A DNA stretch of 63,631 nucleotides, the filler included, from Octopus bimaculoides (Eukaryota): NCBI RefSeq assembly GCF_001194135.2. It is 5 parts of 5 records of this genome, joined end to end, with 100 filler letters (N's around TTAATTAATTAA, not from the genome) between each part and the next. Parts side by side here need not be neighbours in the genome. Positions count along the whole stretch, not along the records: positions 12,777 to 21,435 come from NC_069001.1; 4 more parts are not named here. One strand, written 5' to 3'. This document shows, piece after piece, positions 14,063 to 21,548 of the stretch. Position 1 is the stretch's first letter; each line of letters begins with the position of its first letter. The translations under genes were made by a program, and so were the position numbers. The notes beneath the pieces are model-generated. The model was not told the DNA's origin. It made no database searches and saw only the letters and a program-made list of their open reading frames with translations.

Positions 14063-14124
14063 AAACCCAAGACCCTCCCAGGAACAATGGATGGAGAAGA
14101 TGAAGGGGAAGGTGGTATCCATAC

Positions 14125-14277
14125 CTGTTCAACACGTGGGTCATCAATAATTGCTTTATGAACAATCGCCATCACAGTATTTTCACAGCCTTTTTGAAGA
14201 TAAGGTTCACCAAACCAGTAGATGTTATCAAAAGCAATGGTTCCTCGTGGGGCCAATATGTTATTGTCCAACACTGA
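14125..14277 (-). CDS. O-methyltransferase coding exon 4 (DN metal-binding motif)
   Basis: Acceptor aaattttag|TCA; 153 bp, phase 0 to 0; SVLDNNILAPRGTIAFDNIYWFGEPYLQKGCENTVMAIVHKAIIDDPRVEQ; probable donor CAG|GTATGG. Confidence 0.92.
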
Positions 14278-14374
14278 CTAAAATTTACAAAAATCAAAAA
14301 CAAAAAAGAAACACTTAAGAAAATAAAATAACCAACAAAGAATAATAATAATACTCAAATTGAATATATTAACC

Positions 14375-14560
14375 ATCATCATCATCATCATCATCATTTG
14401 ACTGGAACTGGTAAGCTAGAGAACTGCACCAGGCTCCAGTCTGATTTGGGCTGGGTTTCTATGGCTGGATGCTCTTCCTAATGCCAACCACTCCACAGAG
14501 TGTACTTGGTGCCCTTTATATACCACTGGCACTGGTCACAACTAAGCTTGACATGTTTTC
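14375..14560 (-). mobile_element. RTE/Expander-like 3' end in OMT intron 3 (another copy at ~17470-17685 +)
   Basis: Minus strand gttggcattaggaagagcatccagccatagaaacc ... followed by a (GAT)n tail. Confidence 0.55.
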
Positions 14561-14605
14561 TCAAGCACAGAAAATCACCATTTGTCTCAGACAGACAGCT
14601 TTAAG

Positions 14606-14651
<46 letters not shown>

Positions 14652-14715
14652 TAGAAAGTGAGAGATAGGAGAGCTGGACAGGTAGATGGACAAGTAGACA
14701 GAGATGCTGTGTTAC

Positions 14716-14816
14716 CTTGAAGTAATCTATGTATCCAGACTTGTCTGCATCGATGAAGATAAAGTCTGCCTTTACACCTTCCTTTGCCAGGGTCTTCAAT
14801 GTCTCCAGGGCTGGGC
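14716..14816 (-). CDS. O-methyltransferase coding exon 3 (FIDADK motif)
   Basis: Acceptor cctcacccctag|GC; 101 bp, phase 1 to 0; PALETLKTLAKEGVKADFIFIDADKSGYIDYFK; donor AAG|GTAACA. Confidence 0.95.
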
Positions 14817-15249
14817 CTAGGGGTGAGGAACAAAGAGAAGAAGTGTGAGTGAGGGGCTAGGGATGTTATTCTCATTACTACAACCCATGACCTATCGTTT
14901 TACACAAACTCACCACCATCACCATCACACTCGCGCACTCACACACACATACACCCAAGGCTTCAAAGAAGCCTTGGGTGTATGCGTGTGTGATCTGTGT
15001 CTTGATGATGACAGAAGGGGTCAGGAGACGGTAGTCATGTGACTATATTCCAACATCCTACTTGACCATGTGAACACATCCCACGTGAGTCACTCTAGTA
15101 ACACTCCAGGTGACCACATTTCACGACTGAGGAGAGTGCATTAAAGTAAATAATGCATTGACGAATACACAGGCAAGTGCAACGAAGGACATACAAGAAG
15201 TGCATCAAGGAGTGAACATATGCAGGACAGACATGCAACATGTGCTTAC

Positions 15250-15459
15250 CAATTTTGATGGTGATTTTCTTGCCATGTGGACTTTTATCAAAGAAGCTGC
15301 GAGCAGATTTCTCAAGGTAGGGTTCAATGTCACACGCAAACAGCTGCCCATCGGCCGGAAGGGCTTCAGCCATGGACAAACTTGCAAATCCAGTAAACAT
15401 GCCAATTTCTATCACAGTTTTGGCTTTCTGCATGCTGACCAGCATCTTGAGGACTTGAC
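15250..15459 (-). CDS. O-methyltransferase coding exon 2 (SAM-binding motif I)
   Basis: Acceptor ttttgcag|GT; 210 bp, phase 1 to 1; QVLKMLVSMQKAKTVIEIGMFTGFASLSMAEALPADGQLFACDIEPYL...DKSPHGKKITIKI(G); donor G|GTAAGC. Confidence 0.95.
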
Positions 15460-15814
15460 CTGCAAAAACAGAAATTATAGGGGTCAGTAATGAGAGTGGA
15501 CAAGTGGTAGGGGGATAGGATGGTGGTGGTGCTGGGGTGTAGGGGTTTGATGATTTTCTTTGTTGCAAAATTTTCGTACAAAGTTTAGTGTAACATTCAG
15601 AGAAAATCAAAGTACCCTAACATCACCTTCACCACCACCACCACCACCAACAACAACATCATTATCATCATCATCATCAACACCACCAACAACAACATCA
15701 TCTTCATCCCATGCTTACCTGAGTCAAATGGGATTTGTCAACACAGATATGCTATGACAAGATGCTCTTCCTGTCACCAACACTCATCTGTTTCCATAGA
15801 CACACACAAATATA

Positions 15815-16027
15815 TGAAGGGGTGCTGAAAAGTTACTGGCTTTGAGTAAAAGAAAATACAGGGGGATCAATTATGATTTTATTCAACATATTCCCCTCTC
15901 AGATCCATATACTTATTGCAGTAACCCTTCAGATTTTCTAAGCCCTGTAAAAGAACTCGGAAGGCTGAGCTTCCAGCCAGGCCTTCCATGATACCCCTAA
16001 AACCAGGAATTTTTCAGCACCCCATCG
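15815..16027. mobile_element. Mariner-derived MITE in OMT intron 1
   Basis: TIRs tgaaggggtgctgaaaagtt / aatttttcagcaccccatcg flanked by TA; a related right end lies at ~45670-45768. Confidence 0.75.
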
Positions 16028-16321
16028 TATATACGATGGGCTTCTTTGAGATTATATATACCAAATCCCCCAGCTTGGCACAAGTGACATCACAACTCAT
16101 TTCTACAGCTGAGTGAATTGGAGCAACGTTAAATAAAGAGTCTTGCTCAAGAACACAACACACCACCTGATCTGAGAATTGAACCCACTATCTCACAATT
16201 GTGGGCCTGACGCTCTAACCACTGAGCCATATGCACACACACACACATACAAACTATTTATGGAAGTGCCCCAGTATGGCCACAGTTCCAATGAATGAAA
16301 TGAGTAAAAGATAATAGATAC

Positions 16322-16604
16322 CTGCCCATTCTCCCGACGCCATATTAGGGCCCAGCCTATACTGTGTGACTTTCTGCTGGGCCAAAAGTTCCCAATTATT
16401 GGTGTTAGTAAACTGAAGAATTTCCTGACGAACTGGTGTCACCGGAGTGTTTAAGTTCAGTGCATAACAGTCACGCTTGATGTGCATCTGCAAGATTTTC
16501 AGAAGTCGTTCTTTGGTCCCTTTGTCTTCAGTGCTCTCATACCAAAGCTTTAGCTCCTTCAGAGCTGGGTCATATAAAGGTAATCCTTTTAAACTGTTGT
16601 CCAT
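16322..16604 (-). CDS. O-methyltransferase (CCoAOMT/COMTD1 family, MysB/MT-Ox-like), coding exon 1
   Basis: ATG at 16604-16602 in context aaacaATGG with an in-frame TAA two codons upstream; encodes MDNSLKGLPL...YRLGPNMASGEWA(G); donor G|GTATCT at 16321, phase 1. Confidence 0.85.
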
Positions 16605-16715
16605 TGTTTACTGTTTGGGTGTTGGATTGGTCAGTTGGCTGGTCAGGTTAGAGTTGGTCAAAGTAGGGAACAGGTAACCAGAGAAGAAAAAAAGGAAAGA
16701 AATGAGAGAAAAAAT
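16605..16715 (-). promoter_or_regulatory. Probable 3' splice site upstream of the OMT start codon (implies an upstream 5' UTR exon)
   Basis: Minus strand: long polypyrimidine tract, ctctaac/ctgac branch-like motifs, then cag ending at 16639, 34 nt before the ATG. Confidence 0.5.
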
Positions 16716-16745
16716 TTATTATAAGATACAATACACACACATATA

Positions 16746-17240
16746 CAGGGTGTGGTCAATAAACTGTTGTCTAAATTATGCAAAAATGAAAATAACACTG
16801 ACATCTCATTTTAACAGATATATTTACCAAAATTATATAAAAATATCTTGAAATATGAAAGAGTAAATATATTCAATAAAATCGCCATTGGCATTCGGAA
16901 TCTCCTGCAACTCTTCTGGGTGGTTTCTTTGTTTAAGTTGGTGAATGCTGCCATAATCCTTGCCTTCAGTTCATCTTTGGTGTGTTACAAGGTGTTCAAA
17001 TGCACCCCACACATCATAATCAAGGGGGTTGCAGTGTGGGGAATTAGGTGGCCAGATGTTAGGGGTGATATGGTCGCAGAAATTGCCTGACAACCATGAA
17101 TGGGTTCTCCTGCTTGTGTGGCATGGGGCAGAGTCCTGTTGCCAGACATAGGGTCTCCCAGAAGCCACCCTCTTCACTCAGGGCAGCACTACCTCCTCCA
17201 AGCACTTAATGTAAGCCTTCTCTGTTGAGTCTGAGGCCAT
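16746..17240 (-). mobile_element. maT (DD37D) Tc1/mariner transposon, 3' fragment
   Basis: WQQDSAPCH...WPPNSPHCNPLDY with 37 residues between the catalytic Ds; terminal cagggtg preceded by TA at 16744-16745. Confidence 0.85.
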
Positions 17241-18533
17241 GATTCTGAGCAAAAATTAGAAACAGTTCTTTATATTCTGAGTTCAAATCTCACAGAGGTC
17301 ACCACTGTCTTCATCGTAGCCAATGAAGGTGTGGGCGAAGAGTGTTAATAGTATTATTAATTATTACTGGCTGAAACCTGTTCTGCCCTGGACACTTCTC
17401 TTATAATTTTACCCGTGCCTCAACTCCTAGCAGAAAGCTTCCTGCTCTGGGTTTACAATTGCGCAAACTGCATGATAGCCTCGGTGGTGCGGGTGGCACA
17501 GTAAAAAGTACTTGGTACGCACATTAAAATGTTGGGTGGCAGGAAGGGTGCCAGGCTGTAGGAACTGTGCCAAAGCGGACATTGAAGCACAATGCAGTCC
17601 TTCGATCTATAGGATCCTGTCAAACCGTTCAACCCATACCAGCACGGAAAAAGGGACATTAAAAGATGAGGAGGAGGGGGAGGATATTTACACTCCATGT
17701 TTTCCCTTTTCCAAACTTGCTGCTTAGGTATGAGAAATTTATTCGCTGGCTTAACTAATCAACAATAGACCCAGATAAACTGGTTAGGACAGGTTGTGTA
17801 TAACTTAGGAAGGGGGTTAAGTTTGCGGTGTGGTGTAAGCAAATTTATGTTTTCAATTTTTCTTAAAAACTCTGTCAGAAATTATTTATCATATATTGTT
17901 ATCGTGGCATTTCGTTTTAATAATTTAATCCTTTATTTCATTTTTTTTAGAATTATTTCCCTTACATCTGAAGCAAAAGTTAAACTGAATTTTCTCCCTT
18001 GAAAGTCTTATCTCTGAATTTGCGATTCGTTGGAAGAGATGAGAAACTGAGGGAATCCTCTAAGATTTGAACTTGGGTCATGAATAGTAGCATTTGTTCG
18101 ACTAAAGGCGGTGCTCCAGCATGGTCGCAGTCAAATGACTGAAACAAGTTAAAGAGTATATCGCACAGAAACTTTTAAGAGTGTCCTTAATTTTTAACTA
18201 GGGCAGTATTTGTAATTATAGGGATTTATCTAGCAGACTCAAATAGAGTTATTTGTTATGATTAATGATACTGGATATCACTACCAGGTATAACTCTTTC
18301 GACTAACACCGCTGGTCAACTGGTCATTTTCCCCACTCACTGCTCTATTCATCTACGTGAAGCAACTGTACACGTACATGTTATCTTCTAAGGTTTTGCA
18401 AAAATTTAAGCCTAAAGACCTGACGAACCTTTCCCTTTTTTCTTTCCCTTTTTTTCTTTCCCTTTTTTCTTTTCCTTTTTTCTCCTGTCAACCCTTCACC
18501 TCCTCTCAAAATTTTCTTTTTCAGTCACATATT

Positions 18534-18917
18534 GTTGTTGGCACTCCGTCGCTTACGTCGTCGAGGGTTCCAGTTGATCCGATCAACGGAACAGCCTGTT
18601 CGTGAAATTAACGTGCAAGTGGCTGAGCACTCCACAGACACGTGTACCCTTAACGTAGTTCTCGGGGGATATCCAGCGTGACACAGTGTGACAAGGCTGA
18701 CCCTTTGAATTACAGGCACAACAGAAACAGGAAGTAAGAGTGAGAGAAAGTTGTGGTGAAAGAGTACAGCAGGGTTCGCCACCATCCCCTGCCGGAGTCT
18801 CGTGGTGCTTTAGGTGTTTTCGCTCAATAAACACTCACAACGCCCGGTCTGGGAATCGAAACCGCGATCCTATGACCGCGAGTCCGCTGCCCTAACCACC
18901 GGGCCATTGCGCCTCCA
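18534..18917 (-). mobile_element. tRNA-derived SINE family C, full length, young
   Basis: A box tggcccggtgg and B box ggtttcgattccc on the minus strand, (CAA)n tail, 12-bp TSD cagtcacatatt at 18522-18533 and 18918-18929. Confidence 0.92.
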
Positions 18918-19244
18918 CAGTCACATATTATATATGAATGAAAGCTCATTAAAAACTCTTTTTTAGTGTGCTAGAAATAGCAGCGATCACATAGTTATTA
19001 TTGTAAAGTTTATAGCGTTCCAGGTGGCCAAACCAACAAAATCACTTCTTCATTTGAAAGGGAAAAATATGTATTCATATGTTTAATATATAACTATGTC
19101 ACAAGTGAAGCGTTAACTTCTATTATTTCGATAGAATAATAGATGTTTTATAGAATATTAATGTATTGTATTGTTATGTTTAATATATCACTGTCACGCG
19201 TGAAGCAACGTGAGGATGGCTACAATTGTTTTGTTTATTGTTTA

Positions 19245-19650
19245 CAATTGTATGTATTATCTTTGACTTTTTCGGTCATTGGACGGCGTCCTTGCTGGGG
19301 CACATCATTGACTGGTTTTAGTTGAACAAAACGACCTTTGTAAGTTTTTGTTCTTTAAAATCTGGTACTTAGTCTATCGGATTCTTATTGCCGAACCACT
19401 AAGTTACGTGGACGTAAAGAAACCATTACTAGTTGTCAAAACGAGAGATTGAAGGGCAAACACGCACGCACGCACACACATATACGACGAGCTTCCACGC
19501 AGTTTCCGCCTTCTACTAAATTCACTCGCATGGCTTTGGTCAGAGCTATAGTAGATGACAAAATCTCCCAAGGTGCCACGCAGTAGGACTGAACCAGAGA
19601 CCATATGGGCGCAAAGCGAACTCCGTAACCGCACAATCATACCTGATGCA
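19245..19650 (-). mobile_element. SINE family A, diverged
   Basis: gccgaaccactaagttacg, tatacgacgagcttc, ccaaggtgccacgcagtaggactgaacc. Confidence 0.75.
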
Positions 19651-20175
19651 CAATTCTGAAAAAAGAAACTACTTATTTATATTTCCACCCAACCCACCAA
19701 AGTAAAAAATCAAGTATTTTATACTAATTGCCATCGAGCTTACGATAATGTTTTTCCTATCGTTATGTTGATGCGCGTACATAATAATTAAATATCATAA
19801 TAATTAAATATCATAATAATTAAATACGCCCATCAATCACGGACTGTAATCCTAACTTGGCTACGTCCATCATTAGAGCGGTTGCAGCTTAAATAATTTC
19901 GATGAATTTTAACATGTTTACACATTTTCTAGATTTCGTATTTAAAACTGTGTTGTTGTCTTTGCTTTTTATCAATCATTGAAGCAACATCTGGAAATCT
20001 TTTTTAGAGGGGAAAATATTTAAGACTACACCGTTCCCATTTTGAGGAATGTTTGCTATTGTCCGTGTTTTGTTAGAAAAACGTGACTCTTATGTAACAC
20101 AGCAAGAAGGAGGAGCCTGTACGTGACTGGTTGTTTGATTTGCTAGAAATAACAGCCAAATCTGCTACAAACTAC

Positions 20176-20556
20176 TAGGTACAGGTATGGGTGTGTCGTA
20201 AGAAGTTTACTTCCCAATCACATGGTCCTGGGTGTGGCTCCACTGCGTGACACCTTCAGCAGATGTCTTCTGCGATAACCTTAGGCTGATCAAAGTCTTG
20301 TGAGTGCATTTGGTAGGCTGAAACTGAAAGCCTGTCGTGTGTGTACATTTGTGTTTATTTGTCCCCTTCCACCGCTTGACAACCCCTGTCTGTTTGTTTA
20401 CGTCCCCCGTAACATTAGCAGCTCGGCAAAAAGAAAACGATAAAATAAGTACTAGGCTTTAAGAAAAAAGCTAGTCTTAGGGTCGATTTGTTCGTCTAAG
20501 CCCTTAAAGGCTGTGCCCAGCAGGGTCGCAGTCTAATGACTGAAACAAGTAAAAAG
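20176..20556 (+). mobile_element. SINE family A, diverged
   Basis: Head gtgtcgtaagaagtttacttcccaatcacatggtc through tail gtcgcagtctaatgactgaaacaagtaaaa. Confidence 0.75.
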
Positions 20557-21122
20557 TCTTTGTAAAAAAAAAAAAAAATGTCATTAAATATTGAAGTCCT
20601 AGATGTCCTAAATAGACAGGATAGCCATGGCTAGAATGCCTTTAGGACATAGGTCTGTTTCTTCGCGATTGAACTAGGACAAAACAACGACCACGAAAGT
20701 CTCCGTGTTTTATTCGTGCGACAATTAACCTTTGTATTACGTATGCATTTCTATGCTTGCGTGTCTGTGTGTGTGTTCATTTATAATCTATAATTGCATA
20801 TATTTTCTTCACTACAAACAACTCCCGCATGTCAGTAAACGTAGGATTCAAGTTGCACAGATACATTTCAGCGTATGTCAAAGACAGTCACTGATACTTG
20901 GCTATTAATGATGTCGGTAAGTGCGCCACAGACTTTGGAACTTCAGGTTTGAGTCTCCCTAACGGTCACACGCTCGAAATAGGGAGTAGTAAAACAGTCG
21001 ACAACTGACGAGGAGTTATCTTCTTTCGGTACTTTGTCCTCTGCTTATCTCTCGTGTGCTTACGTATGTTTCACTCGTTGGTGATGTCCTGTACTTAATG
21101 TGTATTTTATATACATACATAC

Positions 21123-21237
21123 ATTAAATCTCTGAGCGAGATGTAAACAGTAGCAATACGGAATCGTAACATATAATTGCCAATTATATGTTACGATTCC
21201 GTATTGCTACTGTTTACATTTCGCTCAGAGATTTAAT
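21123..21237. repeat. 115-bp near-perfect palindrome
   Basis: 57-bp arms, 1-nt centre (21180), one G-T mismatch (21140/21220). Confidence 0.97.
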
Positions 21238-21332
21238 ATAGCTTATTTCTCCTTTTTCGAGATCAGCGACGGTTCGTCGCTGGAAAAACCATATAGTATT
21301 TTGCGAGTGAGATGACTTTTCATCACTAGCTG

Positions 21333-21391
21333 GTGATTAACACACGCTGAGGACGGGTAACCACTCAGAAACTCGGGTCCGTGTGTATCAC
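21333..21391 (+). ncRNA. Minimal type I hammerhead ribozyme-like motif (probably decayed)
   Basis: ACACACG-CUGAGGA-[14 nt]-GAAA-C-UCGG-G-UC-CGUGUGU; stem I is perfect, stem II is imperfect. Confidence 0.5.
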
Positions 21392-21548
21392 GTAAGGCTA
21401 GAGATGGGAGCGATGACTTCCCCTCACAAATACTANNNNNNNNNNNNNNNNNNNNNNNNNNNNNNNNNNNNNNNNNNNNTTAATTAATTAANNNNNNNNN
21501 NNNNNNNNNNNNNNNNNNNNNNNNNNNNNNNNNNNTATAGATATATAG

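Follow-up and report, generated by a model that had tools for sequence, protein, structure and literature searches.

Evidence for an ancient animal O-methyltransferase of the MysB/MT-Ox clade in Octopus bimaculoides

Gadusol in fish and mycosporine-like amino acids (MAAs) in cyanobacteria are natural sunscreens. MysB of the cyanobacterial MAA clusters and MT-Ox, which works together with EEVS, both methylate, with the help of a metal, the enolic hydroxyl of a cyclohexenone derived from a C7 cyclitol. MysB converts demethyl-4-deoxygadusol to 4-deoxygadusol, and MT-Ox catalyzes its step on the way to gadusol (PMC4426668, PMC7826186). Algae have been proposed as the source from which vertebrates received the EEVS/MT-Ox gene pair by horizontal transfer (Osborn et al. 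2015, PMC4426668). MAAs have been reported in cuttlefish lenses and corneas and in mollusc egg masses, and gadusol in echinoderm eggs (PMC3083659; 10.1101/2023.01.30.526370). Here, we analyzed a gene related to these enzymes in a stretch of 63,631 nucleotides from Octopus bimaculoides (assembly GCF_001194135.2), hereafter the window, in which five parts of the genome are joined by filler. The gene lies on the minus strand of the piece at window positions 12777–21435 (NC_069001.1), with its coding exons between 14125 and 16604. Its existing label is the automatic "O-methyltransferase MdmC" only, and we found no published study of it. Sequence comparison indicates, in our assessment, that the gene is genuine and an ancient animal representative of the MysB/MT-Ox clade, and we infer its function from this kinship. 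We consider it rather probable that the region contains exons 1–4 of a five-exon gene that is intact and kept by selection and would encode a stand-alone class-I S-adenosylmethionine (SAM)-dependent O-methyltransferase (OMT) of this clade acting on a gadusol-type substrate.

The four coding exons, delimited by translation and splice sites, sum to 747 nt (249 codons), and all introns have GT...AG borders with pyrimidine-rich acceptors. Exon 1 (coding part, 16322–16604) begins with Met1 (ATG at 16602–16604, preceded two codons upstream by an in-frame TAA), reaches into codon 95, of which it includes the first base, and encodes the N-terminal helices and the M-x-S-G loop. Its boundary is identical in the orthologue from Octopus sinensis, the octopus used for comparison (P0001, 267 aa, 94% identical). 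Intron 1 (15460–16321, phase 1, GTATCT...TTGCAG) is followed by exon 2 (15250–15459, 210 nt), which carries the SAM motif VIEIGMFTG, the acidic residue in ACDIEP, and SPHGKKI. Exon 3 (14716–14816, 101 nt), which follows intron 2 (14817–15249, phase 1), encodes FIDADK, in which alignment with Asp163 and Lys166 of caffeoyl-CoA OMT (CCoAOMT) marks Asp187 as a putative metal ligand and Lys190 as the putative catalytic residue. After intron 3 (14278–14715, phase 0), exon 4 (14125–14277, 153 nt) encodes the putative metal ligands Asp215-Asn216 and ends with DPRVEQ249. The coding sequence is incomplete at its 3' end: Q249 is followed by the GTATGG donor of intron 4 (phase 0; 5' part at 12777–14124), without a stop codon.

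The initial annotation took these four exons for a complete protein of 249 residues. The exons, splice sites, and codon count hold, but the protein continues into a fifth exon beyond the piece edge. In O. sinensis, exon 5 (about 18 codons plus the stop, at 16291–16344 of the locus sequence L005) encodes VLLPVRDGIALVRRVEDI* and lies 2.6 kb downstream of exon 4. Window position 12781 aligns to position 15466 of L005, and translation of 12777–14130 in three frames revealed no frame coding for the VLLP.RDG of the last exon. By synteny with O. sinensis, the final exon is placed about 0.8 kb past the left edge of the piece, so that the coding sequence is cut by this edge and not broken. The piece runs collinear to chromosome CM016879.1 of O. 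sinensis (80–94% nucleotide identity), in agreement with its assignment to octopus. The coding sequence is 95% identical to that of O. sinensis, and the dN/dS of 0.21 between them indicates purifying selection. Directly before the ATG, positions 16605–16620 (CCCAAACAG followed by TAAACA) resemble a 3' splice site, and a noncoding first exon may lie farther upstream; the sea cucumber and fish genes described below have an intron after codon 4–5 instead.

The protein matches Pfam family PF01596 (Methyltransf_3) over residues 74–248 (E 7.2e-43; 146.7 bits against a cutoff of 22), and NCBIfam returned no match for it. The motifs quoted in the initial annotation were all located in the translation: VIEIGMFTG at 109–117, ACDIEP at 136–141, SPHGKKI at 154–160, FIDADK at 185–190, DN at 215–216, DPRVEQ at 244–249, and the pattern W71...T79.YRL...M88.SG..GQ.LKM. 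An AlphaFold2 model based on a 50-sequence alignment (pLDDT 91, pTM 0.85) consists of a Rossmann OMT core after four N-terminal helices, predicted at residues 13–24, 28–50, 57–68, and 71–76, which agrees with the helical N-terminal extension proposed at the outset. T66 and W71 are invariant across the alignment. Of the signatures named there for MysB and MT-Ox, this extension with T66 and W71 is specific to the long-form group, as is Y224, whereas SPHG.KI and DPRVE are family-wide: they are also present in bacterial OMTs of the short form (~212 aa) and, in part, in CCoAOMT.

In a Foldseek search against the PDB, the top 50 matches were all class-I cation-dependent OMTs with a probability of 1.00, including SafC, SynOMT, CCoAOMT, norbelladine OMT, and COMTD1. 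The octopus protein shares with the solved enzymes (Legionella 3r3h, SynOMT 3cbg, SafC 5log, alfalfa CCoAOMT 1sui, and COMTD1 2avd) the fold, with target-normalised TM-scores of 0.70–0.77, the SAM site, and the metal and catalytic residues. Unlike it, these enzymes lack the first ~50–75 residues of the extension, and their known substrates are catechols or phenylpropanoids; their sequences match at E 1e-31 to 6e-17. D187, K190, D215, and N216 align with D163, K166, D189, and N190 of alfalfa CCoAOMT (sequence checked against 1sui; that of human COMTD1 was also verified), and we assume for them the roles of metal ligands and catalytic lysine that these residues have in the CCoAOMT structure. As judged from family, motifs, and predicted fold, the octopus protein is a class-I, metal-dependent SAM O-methyltransferase.

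Relatives were collected by a phmmer-type search of 5.8 billion proteins and an exhaustive search of 50%-identity representatives. Among the matches listed, O. sinensis ranked first (94% identity), followed by Argonauta (67%) and cephalopod-like sequences on short contigs (54–56%); next, interleaved at 38–49%, came other molluscs and many cyanobacterial OMTs of ~277 aa. The cyanobacterial OMTs are 41–46% identical over 82–93% of the protein (E about 1e-46 to 1e-47). Both of those checked for gene order (P0073 and P0036) lie in a row of DHQS-like cyclase, OMT, ATP-grasp, and D-Ala-D-Ala-ligase-like genes. Because this is the canonical mysA-mysB-mysC-mysD order, we identify these two proteins as MysB. 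A 551-aa protein of the fish Channa striata, composed of OMT and SDR (short-chain dehydrogenase/reductase) domains by Pfam, is 45% identical to the octopus protein (Channa residues 40–256; E 2.7e-49). The fish gene (L009 10001–19351) has a DHQ_synthase-family gene (L009 4590–8303) as its neighbor, 1.7 kb away and transcribed divergently, and this architecture and neighbor identify the pair as vertebrate MT-Ox and EEVS. The OMT+SDR architecture was also found in Vitrella and Pycnococcus, and DHQS-OMT fusions were also among the matches.

Profiles were then built for each group and scored against the octopus protein. The profile of noncephalopod molluscs reached 279 bits, that of MysB 219 bits, and that of the MT-Ox methyltransferase (MT) domains 216 bits, followed by DHQS-OMT fusions and short bacterial OMTs (183 bits each) and COMTD1/CCoAOMT (118 bits). 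Human COMTD1 (2avd) ranked 12th among the PDB matches and aligned over residues 85–223 only, with an E-value of 6e-17 against this smaller library, compared with about 1e-47 for MysB and 2.7e-49 for MT-Ox. The resemblance to MysB and MT-Ox over COMTD1, which the initial annotation had stated, is thus borne out by the profile scores. In a neighbor-joining (NJ) tree of 162 sequences (Scoredist distances, 200 bootstraps, rooted on CCoAOMT), the cephalopods (100%) and MysB (95%) formed supported groups, the molluscs clustered together (45%), and COMTD1 fell among the outgroup lineages at the base. The same OMT clade contains other architectures, namely an OMT-TauD dioxygenase fusion and tandem OMT-OMT proteins, one from the basidiomycete yeast Rhodosporidiobolus ruineniae (P0121, 593 aa) and further ones, among them a sequence from a eukaryotic transcriptome; entries of this kind are P0121, P0168 (547 aa), and P0128, P0133, and P0135 (about 520–530 aa).

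Like MysB, the octopus enzyme is a stand-alone protein of similar size (267 aa in O. sinensis against about 277 aa), with the helical N-terminal extension including T66 and W71, the SAM motif, DADK, DN, Y224, and, at the C-terminus, RVEQ-V-L-P-x-RDG. In contrast to mysB, its gene is eukaryotic and has introns, and it does not lie beside a DDGS/EVS or ATP-grasp gene; in the GH[IV]EGQ loop, the [IV]-E of MysB is replaced by W-A in cephalopods. With MT-Ox it shares the MT domain (45% identity to Channa) and two introns of the same position and phase. The C-terminal SDR ("Ox") is missing, since the protein of O. sinensis extends only 18 residues past RVEQ and ends at residue 267, and no SDR coding sequence was found in the piece, nor in the 10 kb on either side of the O. 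sinensis gene. The adjacent EEVS of the fish locus likewise has no counterpart in the octopus piece.

The mollusc group includes members from four classes: cephalopods, gastropods (Haliotis, Gigantopelta, Babylonia, Pomacea, Lottia, and Patella), bivalves (Mytilus, Pecten, Argopecten, Pinctada, Crassostrea, and Solemya), and a chiton (Liolophura), with tandem copies in several molluscs. These classes have been separate since the Cambrian, and identity of the octopus protein to the noncephalopod members is only 38–50%. For the comparison of introns, proteins were mapped exactly onto their loci; the genes compared were those of molluscs, a sea cucumber, one fish (Channa), and one alga (Vitrella). 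The octopus introns lie after residues 94 (phase 1), 164 (phase 1), 198 (phase 0), and 249 (phase 0). All four are found at the same alignment columns and in the same phases in Lottia, Pecten, and Gigantopelta, and the 210-nt and 101-nt internal exons are identical in length across the four mollusc genes. In the sea cucumber Apostichopus japonicus, the gene of a stand-alone OMT (276 aa) contains all four octopus introns plus two more, and the 101-nt and 153-nt exons are common to both. The mollusc and A. japonicus genes, automatically annotated as "O-methyltransferase MdmC-like", have the same architecture. In sequence, the holothurian protein is a distant match (108 bits), and as a query it returned only holothurian relatives, an effect of the word prefilter of that search. 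The sea cucumber has at least two stand-alone OMT paralogues (L011 and L012), one of which lacks SPHG and has DCQK in place of DADK.

Fish MT-Ox shares two of the four introns, one of phase 1 that immediately precedes Q-[TV]-L-K-M and one of phase 0 that separates RVEQ from V-x-x-P; each is located in a gap-free, strongly conserved stretch of the alignment. Introns 2 and 3, common to molluscs and the sea cucumber, are absent from the fish gene, whose MT region has additional introns of its own. The MT-Ox gene of the alveolate Vitrella has none of the four. Under a uniform-site model, the probability of coincidence is ~1e-9 for the sea cucumber and 2e-4 for the fish; if only a tenth of the sites are permissive, these values become 1e-5 and 0.02. 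At the level of gene structure, the comparison shows an old, vertically inherited animal gene that is orthologous to the holothurian stand-alone OMT. The octopus gene and the MT half of vertebrate MT-Ox probably share an intron-bearing ancestor. The initial annotation had suggested a horizontal origin with later acquisition of introns. A recent transfer is excluded by the pan-molluscan distribution together with the four introns shared with the sea cucumber and the two shared with fish MT-Ox, and any horizontal transfer would have to predate the protostome-deuterostome split. With one fish and one alga compared, the sharing of introns sits uneasily with an algal origin of vertebrate MT-Ox.

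By analogy with its characterized relatives, the octopus enzyme would bind SAM at the G-x-G motif (109–117) and the acidic residue after strand beta-2. A divalent metal would be coordinated by Asp187, Asp215, and Asn216, close to Ser90, and would chelate two neighboring oxygens of the substrate, and Lys190 would deprotonate a hydroxyl, which would then attack the methyl group of SAM. Our best guess for the substrate is a cyclohexenone enol of the gadusol/4-deoxygadusol type, which may be supplied by an unlinked enzyme or by diet or microbes; the product would be an ultraviolet (UV)-absorbing antioxidant.

Several observations weigh against this assignment. Because the backbone nodes of the NJ tree have bootstrap values below 5% and do not separate the mollusc group as sister to MysB from the mollusc group as sister to MT-Ox, the relations of these clades rest on similarity ranks and introns; mean distances from cephalopods (MysB 0.86, MT-Ox 0.93, and gastropods 0.91) are equally uninformative on the sister group. 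Partner genes were sought by tblastn (E ≤ 0.1) with cyanobacterial MysA, fish EEVS, a MysC-type ATP-grasp protein, and an MT-Ox-type SDR as baits and the fish locus as a positive control. No cyclase, ATP-grasp, or SDR gene was detected in the window piece, nor within ±10 kb at seven other invertebrate loci (O. sinensis, Lottia, Pecten, Gigantopelta, Patella, and two Apostichopus loci). The gene stands alone, without an SDR domain or a nearby cyclase, and the window piece has no cyclase or SDR exon, just as the initial annotation had it. The literature found, which consisted of reviews only, does not mention EEVS, DDGS, or MysB in molluscs or echinoderms, and we know of no enzyme assay for any stand-alone animal member. 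That a deep-sea vent snail, a chemosymbiotic clam, and a freshwater snail have kept the family speaks against an exclusively UV-related role. Lastly, all cephalopods, that is, octopus, Argonauta, and three cephalopod-like sequences taken as transcripts, have G-x-W-A-G-Q in place of the G-H-[IV]-E-G-Q conserved in MysB, MT-Ox, and most molluscs. This altered loop (16322–16345, codons 88–96 of exon 1; W93-A94 in octopus) is specific to cephalopods and puts Ala94 at the position of CCoAOMT Glu67, which we take to be a metal-site residue. With the loss of the Glu aligned to Glu67, the handling of substrate or metal may have changed in cephalopods.

The absence of linked partner genes, the retention in the snails and clam just named, and the altered loop make a shift to a catechol-like substrate a serious rival. 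The gene would then have the same ancestry, but cephalopods would have co-opted the enzyme for another vicinal-dioxygen substrate outside the cyclitol sunscreen route. Candidates are catechols (DOPA- or dopamine-derived precursors of ink or cuticle), ommochrome or flavonoid-like dietary compounds, and xenobiotics. The loop with W93-A94 lines the metal/substrate site, the structural neighbors are all catechol-type OMTs, neither a cyclase nor an SDR is linked to the gene, and tandem duplications, as seen in molluscs, are typical of detoxification and secondary-metabolism families. Against co-option, the similarity to MysB and MT-Ox is far above that to any characterized catechol OMT, and the N-terminal extension with T66 and W71, together with Y224, is kept as in these enzymes. 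We regard such a shift as possible, though on the unlikely side.

Standing alone without partner genes nearby, and with no stop codon to its coding sequence in the piece, the gene could also be taken for a leftover from a sunscreen pathway since lost, either decaying or without function. This is very improbable. The missing stop codon is explained by the piece edge, the reading frame is intact and under the constraint given above (dN/dS 0.21), the catalytic residues are kept, and the gene is conserved across Mollusca. Moreover, a related cephalopod protein (P0005, 54% identical to that of octopus) is encoded without interruption on contigs of 1.2–1.75 kb and aligns gap-free across the octopus exon junctions. 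It is listed in 35 blocks of sequencing-run assemblies, and 24 of its contigs were read. We read these intron-free contigs as mRNA assemblies, which speak for the related protein and not for the octopus gene itself.

The octopus protein has the Pfam family and fold expected of an ordinary orthologue of vertebrate COMTD1, but the partial match (residues 85–223, E 6e-17), the 118 bits against 216–279 for the MT-Ox, MysB, and mollusc profiles, and the position of COMTD1 among the basal outgroup lineages of the CCoAOMT-rooted tree refute such orthology at the level of sequence similarity and leave it scarcely credible. Bacterial contamination or a recent transfer from a bacterium or alga to octopus, which the cyanobacterial identity of the closest named non-mollusc matches might suggest, has a negligible probability and is refuted for any post-bilaterian date by the four spliceosomal introns, the embedding among octopus repeats and microsatellites in collinearity with an O. 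sinensis chromosome, and the orthologues with the same introns in other molluscs and the sea cucumber.

The noncoding parts of the piece contain several repeats. (AT)n, (GA)n, and (CAT/CAC)n microsatellites lie within the introns at 12777–12815, 14608–14650, 14375–14400, and 15620–15710, and a 10-N assembly gap is located in intron 4 (13542–13551). Intron 1 contains 34-nt inverted repeats (15810–15843 and 15999–16032, 85% complementary, 155 nt apart) with the look of a miniature inverted-repeat transposable element. In the intergenic region upstream of the gene, a near-perfect palindrome of 121 nt (21120–21240) has 60-nt arms that are 97% complementary around a 1-nt spacer, and the block around it (20465–21435) is 87% conserved in O. 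sinensis. A tRNA-like segment resembling a short interspersed nuclear element (SINE) is found at ~18780–18900 on the minus strand (…GGTGGTTAGGGCAGCGGACTCGCGGTCATAGGATCGCGGTTTCGATTCCCAGACC…), and short repeated pieces resembling SINE tails occur at 18116–18153/20517–20554 and 13943–13975/17267–17299. ARAGORN and Rfam called nothing in the piece, the SINE-looking segments included.

Under the gadusol-type reading of the octopus enzyme, a broader scenario may be put forward tentatively. An orthologue of the methyltransferase half of vertebrate MT-Ox, as old as Bilateria, would survive in molluscs and holothurians, and octopuses would use it to complete or modify a UV-absorbing antioxidant of the gadusol/4-deoxygadusol type, drawing on an unlinked cyclase or on a precursor from the diet or from microbes. 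If this doubtful scenario is true, gadusol-type methylation was already present in early animals instead of reaching vertebrates by a late algal transfer, and it would contribute to an explanation of the UV-absorbing compounds that have been reported from the eyes of cephalopods and the egg masses of molluscs. Conversely, if the substrate is a catechol, the gene would be an example of a sunscreen-pathway enzyme re-used after loss of the pathway. The gene family gives a handle on two questions, namely whether invertebrates other than cnidarians make their sunscreen compounds themselves or obtain them from the diet, and where the vertebrate EEVS/MT-Ox pair came from. On the intron evidence, the methyltransferase dates to before the protostome-deuterostome split, and it provides a named candidate enzyme for animals in which MAAs or gadusol have been reported, in the cuttlefish eye, mollusc egg masses, and echinoderm eggs.

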